Positions 12,465 through 56,100 of a stretch of 56,534 bases of DNA are shown piece after piece; position 1 is the stretch's first letter, and every line of letters starts with the position of its first letter. The DNA comes from Octopus bimaculoides (lineage: Eukaryota). The stretch is taken from positions 414,388 to 470,921 of the forward strand of contig NC_069010.1 in the NCBI RefSeq assembly GCF_001194135.2. Reading direction: 5' to 3'. Made by a program: the position numbers and the translations under genes. Under the pieces are notes generated by a model. It had not been told where the DNA came from. It saw only the letters and a list, made by a program, of their open reading frames with translations, and did no database searches.

Positions 12465-12648
12465 CAATGAACTCATTCTCGTTACATAAGTTCCCGACGC
12501 AACAACCAACACAAGAAATGCCACTGGTCCATTTAGTGCATGTAAAGATATTGTCTACCATAGCTTGAACACATTTCCTGTATGTGCTGCAGGACTTTTC
12601 AGTCTTCAAAGTAACACCGTTCGTTGATAATGCGAACCGGCATACAGG
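12465..12648 (-). CDS. Ly6/uPAR-like three-finger domain exon 2 (phase 0-1, 184 nt)
   Basis: tattacag|PVCRFALSTNGVTLKTEKSCSTYRKCVQAMVDNIFTCTKWTSGISCVGCCVGNLCNENEFI-G|gtaagt. It contains the CCxxxLCN terminal motif. Confidence 0.85.
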
Positions 12649-14503
12649 CTGTAATAATAGATATGAAAATTATACACTACAACCACAATATTTATGAGTA
12701 CGACTACTGCTAACTACAGCAACATCAACAATAATAAGATTATTGGGGATGTTTACGATGTAAGAAAGTTTAATCATTGCTTAAACATTTATCCAAAAGC
12801 AACAAGTAAAATAGAAAACAACTTGCCAAAATGTTGAAAGTTAACGGCAGCAGTAAACCACTGTAAAATTTATTGCCATTAACCACTTAAAATAATGTAT
12901 TAAATGCTGACAGTGTCCAAAGTTCTCTGATCCCATATAGATATGGCCATCAGATCACGCTCTATATCAAAACCGCATCACTCTGTCACCCACCATCAAA
13001 CTTAAACTAGGTCAAAGAATCTGAGTAAAACTGTATCAATCCGCCAGATTTCTTGTTAATCGGAGAATGCACACGAGGATTTTTTCATAAACAATTTACG
13101 AAAAATCACGCGTGCAAAACTCACCAAGAAGAGAAACTAAAACACCGTTACCCAAAGATGATAATTAAAAAAAAATGATCAAACTGAACTCCTCAGTCCT
13201 AGCAAAAAAAAAACAGAAAATAGTAAAATGGACAGAAGAGAAATTTGGTTTTATTTTGCAACTATCTTTTATGACCACGAAATGAAAATACGATATGCTA
13301 GAATAAAATGTGAAGAGAAAATAGCCAAGTTCGAACTGTATCATCGGATCCCAACAAACCAGCTAACTGAATAAGATACATTCTGAAAACGAAAAATATC
13401 GGAAACTGAGAAGAACATTTAAAGGGAAGAATGCATCAGAAAAATACAATAAATGATTTCAGACGCCTAACAACAATAAATATAATGGAAATGTACACCG
13501 CGAAGTCAGAAATAAGATATATGTAGTCTTAATTTGAACCTGAAACTCATTTCTTTCAAACTAGGAAAAATTTCAGAAAGAAAGTAGCCAGATCTCAGAA
13601 ACTAGGTCATGACGTCATGAAAAATGACCAATGATGCTTAAACACTACAGATAATATTGCTAGACTGGCGTCTTTAAAAGGTCAAATAGGGTCGGTGATT
13701 GCAAATGACTGAAGCTTTAAATAAGCTAACTGAACTTGAAGAAAACATAAAGGTCTGAGAACAAGACACACAATAAAACAGAGAACAGAATGCAGCCATG
13801 CTCTTATATTACGCTCTATTCTCCTATATTCTCGTCAGTTAATGTGAAGCATTGTTCTGTGTCAATACCGGTGTCTTTTATTGTTTCTCTCGTGTTCCTT
13901 TCACCAATGTACAACTGTGTAGTCAGAGATATGACTGGCAATTTCAATCTGTATTTTAGCTGCATTTTGAACGTATAGCTTTTAACTTCTTTTCCATTTG
14001 AAAGAATACGATCCCCACCCATTATGTTCTGGAGAGTGTGTTGTACTACTTGATGTGAGAGAAGATTTAACCCGTTTCCAACTTTTCACGTCCGACTTCT
14101 GAATACCTCCTCTAAGTGTAGCGACACAAGGTCGTTCCGCCAGGAACCTTGATCCGAAGTAGACTCCTGGCCCCATACATACACCCTACTGCAGCCATGT
14201 TTGTCGGATAAAGGTCACTCATAATTTCGTAACTTCGATTCCTGTACAGGGTTGTGTCCTTGAAGAAGGCTCTTGATTTCACTTTGTTCCAGTCTGTTCA
14301 ATTGATAATGGATTTGCAGCCTAGTAATGGTCATCTATTTCTCTCTTCAATCGTCACATATATGTCGTTCTGCTGAGTCATGAATAAGAAGACACCCAAA
14401 CAATTGGCGAAAGCATACTACAAGCTACCTACGCATACTGGCTTGCGAGTGACGGTTATCGATATATTTTAACAGAAAGGAAGAAAGTAAGATTTCAGTT
14501 TAC

Positions 14504-14595
14504 CTTTGGTCCTGGACACCTTGTCACTTCTGAATCCTTGCACATCGTTCCTGAACATGTTTGACAATGTAGGTTCCGTTGGAATAACGAGTAAT
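14504..14595 (-). CDS. Ly6/uPAR-like domain exon 1 (phase 1-0, 92 nt)
   Basis: ttctgtag|(N)YSLFQRNLHCQTCSGTMCKDSEVTRCPGPK|gtaaac. The CxxC start is typical of LU domains, and the phases fit both neighbours. Confidence 0.85.
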
Positions 14596-15893
14596 CTACA
14601 GAATATAAGTACATATCCATATTTACGTAACAAATAGTGTAATGCGTAGCAATAACAAGCATGAAAGTTATTTGTTGCCCTTTTCGTTTAGTATTCTGAT
14701 ATAACAAATAAGTGAAAAAGGTAGAACAAGTCAAATATAAGGATGAAATTTGAGAGTTGCAAGTGTTTTTGCAGTGCGAATTCCCTTATAGGAGATGGGA
14801 ATGTCATTTAAATTATGTTACAATGTGATACAGAATGTGGAAAAGGCCATAATATGTGAACTGAGTAACGTATTATTTGAATACACAATAGAAAACATGA
14901 TCACAAATATGATACTCTTTCAAATATATACTCGTTTATGTATGTATGTATGTATGAATACATGTTTGTGTGAGTGCATACGTGTGACTATATACATACA
15001 TACATACATACATACATATATATATATATATATATATATATATATATANNNNNNNNNNNNNNNNNNNNNNNNNNNNNNNNNNNNNNNNNNNNNNNNNNNN
15101 NNNNNNNNNNNNNNNNNNNNNNNNNNNNNNNNNNNNNNNNNNNNNNNNNNNNNNNNNNNNNNNNNNNNNTTGTACTTGGGGATGGTCATATTGCCAGTTT
15201 AGCCAATAAAAACACACGCACTGTATATTTGGTGTTAATTTGCTTCAGCTTTATATTACATTAATCTTAATCTTATTTCGGCCAGAGTTCTTTCGTCACA
15301 CTTCTGTGACCTCATCAGTGGTCCTTTGTTTCCTTCCTTCTTATGTGTGTCTCACCTTGCTAAATATCAGCTATATATATATATATATATATATATATAT
15401 ATGCTGACACGTGGGTCTTCATGAGAGATGTGCATAATCGATCCCCATTTTAAGTGCATCACCTGGAAGCTTGATTGCTTTTATTGAAACCTTCTCTGTT
15501 GTAAACAACCAAGGCAAGTCGTTGATCTGAAGATACCTTCCTACTTAGCCCCGACCGATCACAGCAGCCTTGTCAATGGTCAAGAGCATTGACTGTCTTC
15601 CTGGTTTATCGCTAAAAATATAATTTACTTCTCAACTTCCTTTTCTTCCTCTCTCCCTCACAGCAGGACCAACCTACATCCATACATTATTTATCCCTTC
15701 TCTCACATTTACACTATATACACGCTTCATATGCTATACCACACATTTTACATACATATCTCACTTCGGTAGCACAGTTACTCTCTTCAAACTTTATTAC
15801 ACAAAACACCTCTTTACTTTTGGATATTCTATCTATGACACATACATACAAACACATACACACTGGTACATAGACTCATACATATTCACGCGC

Positions 15894-16010
15894 ACACACA
15901 CACACACACACACACACACACACACACACACACACACACACACACACACACACACACACACACACACACACACACACACACACACACACACACACACACA
16001 CACACACATA
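15894..16010. repeat. (CA)n microsatellite
   Basis: Direct reading. Confidence 0.95.
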
Positions 16011-53998: not shown

Positions 53999-54107
53999 AA
54001 TAATATTAGCAATAATAATAATAATAATAATAATAATAATAATAATAGTAATAATAATAATAATAATAATAATAATAATAATAATAATAATAATAATAAT
54101 AGTAAAA

Positions 54108-54380
54108 GACCTGGAAATAGCAGTAACTCAAATGTGGAGTCTAAAAACAGAAACAATTCGTATCATAGTAGGCGCATTAGGTATGATAAAAATATTCAGA
54201 CAAATACATAACAAAAATACCAGGACTTACAAATATATATAACATACAGAAAATTGCACTACTGGGCACTGCACACATCCTACACTTTCAATATAGTAAC
54301 CATAAGAGCATCACAGCAAACCACATTACATACACAAAGCACACAAAGCTGCGCTCGGTAGTGAAGTGAAAGCACGTTAT
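54108..54380 (+). mobile_element. R4/Dong-like family A 3' end
   Basis: Colinear with 45-330 and has an AAT tail. Confidence 0.75.
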
Positions 54381-56028
54381 AATAATAATAATAATAATAA
54401 TAATAATAATAATAATAATAATAATAATAATGTAATACTGTAATGAAAACACTGCTCTGCCACGATGCTGCTTTGCTATAATACTAACAGTACAACGCCA
54501 AATATATTTAGTTAAACATTTATTCTTCCTTTTTTCATTTTTCTCTTTTTTGTTTATCTTCTCCATATATTTCTATCTTTGCTACTGTAATGAAAAAACT
54601 CCTTTGCCATGAGGCGGATGCGAACCCACCGTCTCCTCCCCGTATTCAAATTGCGAGGTAATTCTTTTTTTATCTTTTGCTTTCAGTCGGAACGACGGTG
54701 ACTAAGCTGGTAACTCTGCAGAACTTGCTCTGTGAGGAGGGCATATGATTCTTGCTATTTTGACACCCAACAGGAAGAAAAACAAGACCTGTATAAAGGC
54801 TAATGAACTCTTACGAGGCAGTGGCCACCAAAATAGCATATACCTAAGAAGCAGAAGCAATCATAACACTTGAGCACTCCTACTAGGAGATGAAAACTTC
54901 AAAAATTAAACCAGGATTATAGGAATCTTATATTCGAGGGTGGAGATCCTGTCAGTATTGGTGTCACGGGAAAAGTACTGGTGTCTGTGCAACCTAATAT
55001 TCACTAAATCATCATGTGTGCTGAAATATCAAATAAAGATAGATATCAGAACGGTGTGAATGAGGCTGGAACATCTTATAAAAGTGTCTCGCCCGACGGA
55101 TGCCCCACTGGTAAGCTGCGTGGGCCCAGTCGGCATCAAACAACTGCTAACAGAAGGTGAATAAAAGAAATGAATGTGGCTGTAATGGAGTGCTAATTTC
55201 TGGGTAATCCGAGAAATGAATGGCGTAATAATATTAATAATAATACGAAGAAGAAGAACGAGAAAAATAAGAGAAAAGTAGAAGGGAAAGAAGAAAAAAA
55301 AGGAAGACGTAGGAGAAGATGGAGTAGAAGACGAAGAGATAAAGTAGACGACAATGAAGTGCAGATGAAGTGAAAGAAAAAGAAGAAAACCACAAGAGGG
55401 GAAGAAAATAAAAAGGAGAATTATAAGATGGCAATTACAAAGAATGAAATAGTTGTGAGAGAATATAAGTAGAAAATGGAGTAGAGGAGAGAAGAAGCAA
55501 CTTGAGAATATATCAAATATTTATAAATATATCTTCAGTGAAAGAGTAACTGGGAAAGTGTTATAAATTTCAAGTGCTGGAAGCTGGTACATTTTACAAC
55601 GAGAAAGAAAGATGTAACTTATAAGTATCTATATTTTTCACTTCTCCATCTTCATGTTACTGCATTAGATAAATAACCTGAATTGAATGAAGAAGTCGGA
55701 GATTAAGAGAAGACGAATAGAAATGAATAGAAGATGGAAAAGAACAAGAAGTTTAAAAGAAGACGAAATATGCATATAAAAGATATATTCACATGTACAT
55801 GAAAATACATACATTTCTATAAATAAGTTTTGATGCAGACATATATATATATATATATATATATATATATATATATATATATATAAACCCATCTGTACTC
55901 GTCATCACAAACAAACAGATATAATACCAATCACGGGACAATATAATTCAGAGTGATAAAAAATAGAGAGGGAAAGAGAAACGAGGTACATTTGTATTAT
56001 TGTAGCAACAAAAAGGAAAAAAACTTAC

Positions 56029-56100
56029 AATATATGTAGCCTAGAAAGACCTTGGAAGCTTGCTTCTCCAATTATCGAAATGACATTTCTGTGAATATAT
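56029..56100 (-). CDS. LRR exon (divergent): YIHRNVISIIGEASFQGLSRLHI
   Basis: tactgctacag|72 nt|gtaagttt, open. It is the most 5' exon visible in the window. Confidence 0.85.

Follow-up and report, generated by a model that had tools for sequence, protein, structure and literature searches.

Results

An in-frame chain of 18 exons on the minus strand

The window analysed here, a stretch of 56,534 nt from Octopus bimaculoides (contig NC_069010.1, positions 414,388 to 470,921 of assembly GCF_001194135.2), is AT-rich (~34% G+C), abounds in simple repeats and transposon remnants, and contains nine N gaps in 56 kb, including those at 4590-4890, 10567-10821, 15049-15169, 19132-20097, 35256-35392, 45583-45988 and 47593-47744. 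Its minus strand, to which all exon coordinates below refer, carries the gene that is the subject of this study, with coding sequence for a series of leucine-rich repeats (LRRs), a probable LRRCT cap, a Ly6/uPAR-type three-finger (LU) domain and a short C-terminal tail. A first-pass annotation made from the sequence had put forward 16 exons, namely 13 LRR exons, the LRRCT exon and two Cys-rich exons, chained without stops in phases 2-2, 2-1, 1-0 and 0-1; all 16 were re-derived, each open, stop-free and bordered by AG and GT. Together with LRR exon 14 and a terminal exon, the full chain comprises 18 exons in frame (1495 nt) with 18 intact AG acceptors and 17 intact GT donors, and encodes a partial product of 497 residues. 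The 5' end of the gene, comprising the signal peptide and LRRNT, is expected beyond the right edge of the window, at 56534; exon 1 begins at 56100.

None of the exons adjoins a gap, the nearest being that at 46054, 66 nt from 45988. One gap (47593-47744) falls within the LRR array and another (10567-10821) separates the second LU exon, LU-b, from the terminal exon, while two are critical for the architecture, as they lie between LRR exon 14 and the LRRCT exon (19132-20097) and between the LRRCT exon and the first LU exon, LU-a (15049-15169). Across these latter two, the exon order is backed by two paralogous loci whose exons and introns are collinear with those of the window: L001, taken from a public assembly of O. 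bimaculoides (CM046630.1) and carrying the gene of the paralog P0001, and L002, a gap-free locus of O. sinensis (CM016887.1). The non-coding sequence of the window has 74-90% identity to the loci from O. bimaculoides and O. sinensis. Since all LRR exons are 72 nt long and in phase 2-2, any exons hidden or collapsed in gaps would alter the number of LRRs, not the reading frame.

The LRR array arose by duplication of 72-nt exons

The array comprises 14 repeats, one per 72-nt exon, and a half-repeat in the LRRCT exon; the repeats are ~24 residues long and follow the consensus LxxLxLxxNxI/L...F. Their exons were located with a loose motif; a strict LRR regular expression, run over AG...GT 72-mers, matched none. 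A pyrimidine tract and AG precede each exon and GTAAG follows it, the first base completes a Leu codon and the exon ends in TT or CT; the introns in between, of 0.45-4.9 kb, are all AG/GT introns on one strand. Exon 1 (56029-56100, phase 2-2) encodes YIHRNVISIIGEASFQGLSRLHI, the most divergent repeat. It is followed by six exons of one subfamily, type A, at 52492-52563 (exon 2), 51122-51193 (exon 3), 48977-49048 (exon 4), 46054-46125 (exon 5, next to the gap at 45583-45988), 44353-44424 (exon 6) and 43827-43898 (exon 7), and by five of a second, type B, with the signature 'xxDHNKxEKIExGxF', at 38837-38908 (exon 8), 36049-36120 (exon 9), 32776-32847 (exon 10), 29442-29513 (exon 11) and 28240-28311 (exon 12). 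Exon 13 (26371-26442) is again in phase 2-2.

A fourteenth LRR exon at 25652-25723, found by tblastn with paralogs and likewise bordered by AG and GT in phase 2-2, encodes NLSNNRIQKYEDGTFLFLSSIAE. This exon corresponds to the final repeat of the array, conserved in the family as 'QxYEDGAFLFLPSI', and is collinear with L001 19081-19152. The junction 26371>17830, proposed in the first-pass annotation, is thus probably wrong, and the likely junctions are 26371>25723 and 25652>17830. A search of the assembled window sequence with nhmmer, using a profile of exon plus flanks, yielded no further LRR exons; its weak matches at 34884-34955 on the plus strand and at 30346-30400 and 39614-39683 on the minus strand proved to be an intronic repeat that occurs in both orientations.

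The spliced product matches Pfam LRR_8 in seven stretches with E=5.1e-91, a value that excludes a chance resemblance. The array was built through tandem duplication of 72-nt phase-2 exons, which form the two subfamilies; dN/dS among the internal copies is 0.24 for type A and 0.41 for type B. Exons 4 and 6 (48977-49048 versus 44353-44424) share 94% identity, and the introns downstream of them 93%, indicating either a very recent duplication of the unit or redundancy around the gaps 45583-45988 and 47593-47744. Between 34001 and 36000, adjoining the gap 35256-35392, the GC/AT skew is reversed (-0.33/-0.20) relative to the positive values in the surrounding 20 kb, and the intronic repeat named above, which elsewhere is on the minus strand, here (34884-34955) lies on the plus strand; this segment may be inverted or a mis-oriented piece.

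In O. sinensis, isoforms X3-X9 of a single family gene (P0042, P0099-P0103) have lengths of 525, 501 and 477 residues, the differences corresponding exactly to 24-residue LRR units. In these annotated models, the 72-nt phase-2 LRR exons therefore act as splice cassettes.

The Cys-rich exons encode a predicted three-finger domain

The LRRCT exon (17673-17830; 158 nt, phase 2 to 1) encodes DLRNNNDMMCGCHLPAFAKHIKKEYRRILVVKGKCQAGSGNVKHILKYSQCQ and shows the Cys pattern CxC...C...C ('MMCGCHLPAF...GKC...YSQC'). Throughout Mollusca these four Cys are retained, and in gastropods and bivalves the cap reads GNPVQCRCDMLAFRQWL, a classic LRRCT. The LU domain is split between exon LU-a (14504-14595; 92 nt, phase 1 to 0), encoding NYSLFQRNLHCQTCSGTMCKDSEVTRCPGPK, and exon LU-b (12465-12648; 184 nt, phase 0 to 1), which ends with '...CVGCCVGNLCNENEFI' and is followed by a GTAAGT donor. 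Its framework, 'LHCQTC...C...C...C...C...C...C...C..CC....CN', has 12 Cys in 83 residues, all of which are fixed or almost fixed in an alignment of 25 sequences from cephalopods, gastropods and bivalves.

Searched with the LRRCT and LU parts of the product, neither the LRRCT models of Pfam nor any other Pfam family, UPAR_LY6 included, gave a match at E<=10, and for LU the paralogs likewise gave none. A profile search of the PDB, with a profile that includes the LU domain of the window itself, returned three-finger proteins only, namely LYPD1 (full-length, E=0.03), followed by ACVR1 and LYPD6. For structure prediction we used the LRRCT and LU domains of P0001, which is 72% identical to the window in LU, together with the pan-Mollusca alignment of 25 sequences; the resulting AlphaFold2 model has a predicted local distance difference test score (pLDDT) of 74, with a helix and short strands in the LRRCT part (pLDDT ~70-80). 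A shallower alignment, of P0005 with 11 close paralogs, resulted in a pLDDT of 42, and that model was not used. In a Foldseek search of the PDB with the P0001 model, each of the top 50 matches was a three-finger fold, the best being Lynx2/LYPD1 (6zss; probability 1.00, TM-score 0.70, root mean square deviation 2.9 Å); others were Prod1, LYPD6/6B, uPAR, colubrid and elapid toxins, and ectodomains of TGF-beta-family receptors. By this prediction, the Cys-rich domain adopts a genuine LU/three-finger fold. The domain calls of the first-pass annotation are borne out for the LRRs and the LU domain, and probably for the LRRCT cap; of the Pfam and structure checks it had proposed, the former recovered the LRRs (E=5e-91) and neither LRRCT nor LU, and the latter recovered the three-finger fold in the paralog.

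Exon LU-a opens in phase 1 after the LRRCT exon, without a Met or a signal peptide, and does so too in nine or more paralog models. The LU exons do not have the marks of a stand-alone Ly6 gene, which would have its own signal peptide and a glycosylphosphatidylinositol (GPI) signal, and a GPI-anchored, Ly6-like product is ruled out by the hydrophilic tail and stop codon described below.

The architecture belongs to a molluscan family of adhesion receptors

A first protein search returned Octopus proteins only, at 57-69% identity and with E-values down to 1e-68, several of which join LRR, LRRCT and LU and then continue. Searches with these continuations led to models that bear GAIN/GPS and are named 'adhesion GPCR G6-like/A2-like' (GPCR, G protein-coupled receptor). 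We then built a hidden Markov model profile (alignment A3) from the LRRCT-LU region of the paralogs and the part following it; in a search of 1.84 billion representative proteins it obtained 59 matches, of which all with a named species are molluscan, and it matches full-length receptors down to E=1e-95. The sources of the family are Octopus bimaculoides, O. sinensis and O. vulgaris, Argonauta, Haliotis, Nucella, the scallops Ylistrum and Mizuhopecten, and Dreissena, and its automatic names include 'ADGRG6-like/ADGRA3', 'adhesion G-protein coupled receptor G6-like' and 'GPR126-like'.

Long family members contain, in this order, LRR_8, the LRRCT-LU match, GPS and 7tm_2, to which are added a SEA domain in one, GAIN-type domains in two and a Death domain in one, and the architecture of the family can be written as LRRNT-LRRn-LRRCT-LU-SEA-(HRM-like)-GAIN-GPS-7TM, where 7TM denotes the seven-transmembrane domain. 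In the paralogs, Pfam recognizes GPS with E-values of 1e-11 to 1e-15 (CSCDHLTSFALLMD) and 7tm_2 with 1e-23 to 6e-52, and the full-length ones have a canonical GPS site and a tethered-agonist-like sequence, 'CSCDHL|TSFALLMD', ahead of 7tm_2. Both the P0001 gene and that at L002 are collinear with LRR exon 14, the LRRCT exon, LU-a and LU-b of the window and with the introns between them. By this homology, and that of the terminal exon described below, the window gene shares common descent with bona fide adhesion GPCRs.

The supplement of Ritschard et al. 2019 (PMC6408891) assigns three O. bimaculoides proteins of this kind (A0A0L8FLR8, A0A0L8HDZ7 and A0A0L8GYR2) to 'group 3' of class B. Group 3 is described there as an octopus GPCR expansion with LRR-bearing members, one of them with a Death domain; a Ly6/LU domain goes unmentioned, and the supplement holds a single unnamed SUPERFAMILY line, SSF57302, at 5.7e-6 for one member (PMC6408891). 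The view taken in the first-pass annotation, that a long LRR solenoid joined to an LU domain is an undescribed architecture, could therefore not be upheld: dozens of Octopus gene models join LRR, LRRCT and LU, and in full-length members the combination forms the N-terminus, ahead of SEA, GAIN, GPS and 7tm_2, of a known family of molluscan adhesion GPCRs. In the searchable literature we found no account of an LU or Ly6 domain in adhesion GPCRs. To our knowledge, LU is not listed among the N-terminal domains of these receptors either. What remains new is modest: the LU domain of the family is undescribed and invisible to Pfam, which refines a known family and is not categorically new.

A terminal exon 3.3 kb past the LU exons

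The gene does not end at 12465, where the first-pass annotation had left it. A terminal exon, whose coding part lies at 9133-9185, follows 3.3 kb past LU-b; its acceptor (tttccAG, phase 1) fits the LU-b donor, and it reads '(G)SSSGYEIEDRIAETNL' followed by TAA, i.e. 'GSSSGYEIEDRIAETNL*'. Its homologues are the final coding exon of full-length members and the 'SSSTGNGTEDRTAETNF*' tails of paralogs without 7TM. Over 9045-9266, the window and the last exon of the gene at L002 in O. sinensis are 82% identical in DNA (E=3e-55), with homology extending into the 3' untranslated region, down to ~7826. The corresponding exon of P0044, a full-length receptor gene at a third locus, L003, reads 'GSSSVNETKGTSEMTLSTKIDQ*' and has 77% identity to the terminal exon region. 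In L001, no homologue of the terminal exon was found.

The 497-residue product has 16 Cys, eight N-glycosylation sequons and a hydrophilic tail of 17 residues. Its maximum 19-mer hydropathy is 1.08, without any segment resembling a transmembrane helix or GPI signal, and it is therefore predicted to be of the secreted type. Tblastn with more than 100 family proteins found no SEA, HRM-like, GAIN, GPS or 7TM exons in the window, in agreement with the first-pass annotation, which had seen no transmembrane or 7TM exon; when 1-12464 and 56101-56534 were searched at E up to 50, the terminal exon was the sole match. Without SEA, HRM-like, GAIN/GPS and 7tm_2 domains, the window copy cannot be a GPCR.

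The distance from LU-b to the last exon is ~45 kb in the full-length gene at L003, where the SEA, HRM-like, GAIN/GPS and 7TM exons occupy this stretch, 14 kb in L002, where the gene lacks 7TM and encodes SEA-HRM-SEA, and 3.3 kb in the window. Annotated 7TM-less paralogs with the same tail are present in O. vulgaris and O. sinensis (P0035, P0036), one of which, P0036, has 844 residues arranged as signal peptide-LRRNT-LRR-LRRCT-LU-SEA-HRM-SEA-tail. The only site in the window able to hide a SEA or further exons is the gap 10567-10821, ~1.6-1.9 kb past LU-b. Both of its flanks are collinear with one O. sinensis segment, position 10822 corresponding to 31285 and 8574 to 31287, with collinearity resuming at 6408-5894. 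The join is thus probably right and the hidden piece probably small.

The C-termini in the family, of the window (9133-9185) as well as P0031, P0035, P0036, P0048 and P0049, are -ETNL, -ETNF, -MTKL or -EVKL, and most of them fit the pattern of class I PDZ ligands (S/T-x-hydrophobic). The C-terminal PDZ ligand of ADGRA2/3 is ETTV. On a secreted product without 7TM, a PDZ-ligand-like motif would be a relic.

Partial copies elsewhere in the cluster

LU-b copies of the subtype found in the window occur as orphans downstream of other family genes, at L001 36243-36395 and L002 29571-29762. Including flanks, they are 83-84% identical to the window by BLAST; for the exon alone the identity is 90% (L001) and 93% (L002). 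These copies are partial duplications scattered through the cluster. In the O. sinensis gene at L002, tblastn reveals stops and a frame change within the LU-b exon (9876-10063), inside which the NCBI model P0031 begins ('MHGLYWLLRRHLCNKNDFIG'). Either a frameshift in the exon or an error of the assembly would account for this.

Discussion

Based on the exon chain, the homology of its parts and the position of the terminal exon, we favour, with some reserve, the view that the minus strand of the window contains the greater part of an octopus gene that has escaped annotation and would be a coding-competent, truncated paralog of the LRR-LU adhesion-GPCR family in the group 3 expansion, probably 7TM-less and of the secreted type. 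A deletion or partial duplication may have taken away the signalling half of the gene. If transcribed from an upstream exon encoding the signal peptide and LRRNT, the remainder would give rise to a soluble, glycosylated LRR-LU ectodomain with neither transmembrane segment nor GPI signal. The suggestion of the first-pass annotation that the locus encodes a member of a secreted or surface recognition protein family holds to the extent that the predicted product is of the secreted type; as a family, what it had seen is the ectodomain cassette of the known group 3 receptors.

Several observations weigh against this assignment. A collection of 5.8 billion sequences contains no annotated counterpart more than ~70% identical in the C-terminal part or more than ~50% identical in the LRR part, so that no existing annotation backs the window copy; for the LRR region, where the search was dominated by generic LRR proteins, this shows only that there is no near-identical annotated protein. 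Relative to its nearest full paralog, the P0001 gene, the window copy has a dN/dS of 0.59, indicating weak constraint. The nearest fragment found in O. sinensis, the orphan LU-b exon at L002 29571-29762, has neither LU-a nor a tail exon and is a relic, because a conserved Cys is changed to Arg; compared with this copy, exon conservation over the flanks (92.9% versus 89.8%, p=0.2) shows no significant excess. We infer the signal peptide of the window gene from paralogs only, in four of which (P0010, P0036, P0042 and P0045) signal peptide and LRRNT are both present, and the three-finger model is that of P0001 and not of the window product. Finally, the first SEA exon of the P0001 gene lies ~2 kb past LU-b, near the position of the gap 10567-10821, and since the length of this gap is only an estimate, exons could be hidden in it.

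Part of these observations would also be expected if the copy were an unexpressed, decaying by-product of tandem duplications in the cluster, that is, a recent pseudogene that has not yet acquired disabling mutations. Its absence from every Octopus gene set in the collection, the missing excess of exon over flank conservation in the comparison with L002, and the orphan LU-b copies of the same subtype in L001 and L002, the latter with a lost Cys, are all in keeping with such an origin, as is the tail, which by its position should derive from a cytoplasmic C-terminus and whose PDZ-ligand-like -ETNL would be meaningless on a secreted protein. However, all 18 exons are open with intact splice dinucleotides, the 1.5 kb of coding sequence have retained all 16 Cys as well as the LRR consensus positions, the exon duplicates have dN/dS values between 0.24 and 0.41, and 7TM-less paralogs with the same tail are annotated in O. 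vulgaris and O. sinensis. We therefore regard a pseudogene as unlikely, if still the strongest competitor.

Somewhat harder to reconcile with the locus is an ordinary full-length LRR-LU adhesion GPCR whose SEA, GAIN and 7TM exons are hidden in, or displaced by, the gap 10567-10821 or a scaffold misjoin. Full-length members are common in the family, the gap lies near the position of the first SEA exon in the P0001 gene, and in a window with nine gaps in 56 kb the gap sizes are estimates. Yet a full-length gene needs ~45 kb and well over ten exons, as at L003, and even the 7TM-less form at L002 takes up 14 kb, compared to a gap of 255 N; moreover, the contigs on both sides are collinear with the same O. 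sinensis locus, contrary to a chimeric join, and the 1.4 kb assembled ahead of the terminal exon contain no family exon. On balance, this arrangement seems rather improbable to us. A previously unknown secreted or surface recognition family that combines an LRR solenoid with LU and is unrelated to known receptors, as the missing transmembrane and 7TM exons and the failure of Pfam to recognize LU might suggest, is refuted for practical purposes, as LRR, LRRCT, LU and terminal exon are homologous to adhesion-GPCR genes exon by exon and intron by intron, and the family is already published as an octopus GPCR expansion (PMC6408891).

Assuming a truncated, secreted paralog, the concave face of the LRRs and the fingers of the LU domain might together constitute a ligand-binding head. 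In the receptor paralogs, this head would be coupled through SEA and GAIN, and through GAIN autoproteolysis at 'CSCDHL|TSFALLMD', to a 7TM domain with a tethered agonist. The window product, if secreted, could bind the partners of the receptor ectodomains without signalling and might thereby act as a decoy or competitor, or as a diffusible adaptor. Going further, it is conceivable, though in our estimate quite improbable, that LRR-LRRCT-LU is a mollusc-specific recognition module, which in octopus would operate in three layers: LRR exons as splice cassettes, many clustered receptor paralogs, and soluble 7TM-less ectodomains, encoded by genes such as the one in the window, that modulate the receptors or compete with them. 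Possible roles of this system would be contact recognition in sucker, skin and axial nerve cord, or neuronal wiring, alongside the protocadherin expansion.

Comparison with known systems

Among known proteins, the octopus group 3 adhesion GPCRs are the closest to the window gene: their 72-nt phase-2 LRR, LRRCT, LU and last-exon sequences are homologous to it, with 57-72% protein identity, and their introns are collinear with those of the window, with 74-84% nucleotide identity. The window copy differs from them in lacking SEA, HRM-like, GAIN/GPS and 7tm_2 domains, and its LRRs (14 or more) outnumber those of most annotated members. The vertebrate receptors ADGRA2/ADGRA3 (GPR124/GPR125) resemble the family in overall plan: N-terminal LRRs and LRRCT precede a small module, either disulfide-rich or Ig-type, which is followed by a hormone-receptor-like domain, GAIN and 7TM. 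In addition, octopus paralogs match Pfam PF26588 ('GAIN_ADGRA3'), one UniRef entry is named 'ADGRA2/3 GAIN domain-containing protein', and the T-x-hydrophobic C-terminus of the family recalls the ETTV of ADGRA2/3. The molluscan family, however, has LU in place of the Ig domain, contains an inserted SEA domain and is confined to molluscs.

With LYPD1/Lynx2, LYPD6, Prod1, CD59 and snake three-finger toxins, the LU domain shares the fold and the motif CxxC...CCxxxxCN, as well as an extra disulfide in the third finger as in LYPD1. These single-domain Ly6/uPAR proteins stand alone; they have a signal peptide of their own and in most cases a GPI anchor. The LU domain in the window, by contrast, lies inside a longer product, its two exons are in phase with the LRRCT exon, and no GPI-type tail follows it. 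A three-finger domain as the ligand-binding part of a larger receptor is also found in the TGF-beta/activin/BMP receptors, of which ACVR1, BMPR2 and TGFBR2 are among the matches; unlike the octopus family, these are single-pass kinases without LRRs and with a different Cys spacing in finger 1. Slit, decorin, LINGO, chaoptin and the lamprey VLRs likewise have a capped extracellular LRR solenoid and 72-nt LRR exons, but none of them carries LU, and the automatic NCBI names of several paralogs (slit-, decorin-, chaoptin-, LRRC15- or LINGO-like) reflect LRR similarity only. Somatic assembly from cassettes, as in VLRs, can be dismissed for the window gene: its LRR exons lie in germline order on one strand, separated by ordinary introns, there is no stalk or GPI signal, and its relatives are all molluscan receptor genes.

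For genome annotation, the locus represents a coding-competent gene of 18 exons that is missing from all gene sets in the searched collection, in a family whose other members are split into dozens of short models with misleading automatic names (slit, decorin, chaoptin, LINGO, LYPD1). For the biology of adhesion GPCRs, it draws attention to an LU domain that follows the LRRCT cap and precedes SEA/GAIN, is conserved in bivalves and gastropods as well as octopus, and is overlooked by standard Pfam scans. The LRR-LU ectodomain and the predicted soluble versions without 7TM offer concrete constructs for ligand hunting.

Transposon remnants and repeats in the window

The 7.8-kb intron between LRR exon 14 and the LRRCT exon contains open reading frame (ORF) fragments on the plus strand (21471-24815) that by eye resemble the tail of a retroelement; the chimeric model P0069 matches them in its N-terminal part (E=2e-12). 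On the minus strand, a transposase-like fragment with stops at 49959-50141 matches the N-terminus of another chimeric model, P0020 ('...YVWLQDSAPCH...'), and a 127-residue ORF at 40002-40385 contains '...NSLQPSGMPPHNLRLKKG...', a putative motif of the Helitron/PIF1-helicase type. A repeat of ~330 bp is present in five copies, at 95-359, 20145-20478, 22380-22700, 53747-54108 and 54156-54430, which are 83-85% identical to L002 27523-27884; one of these copies adjoins the gap 19132-20097.

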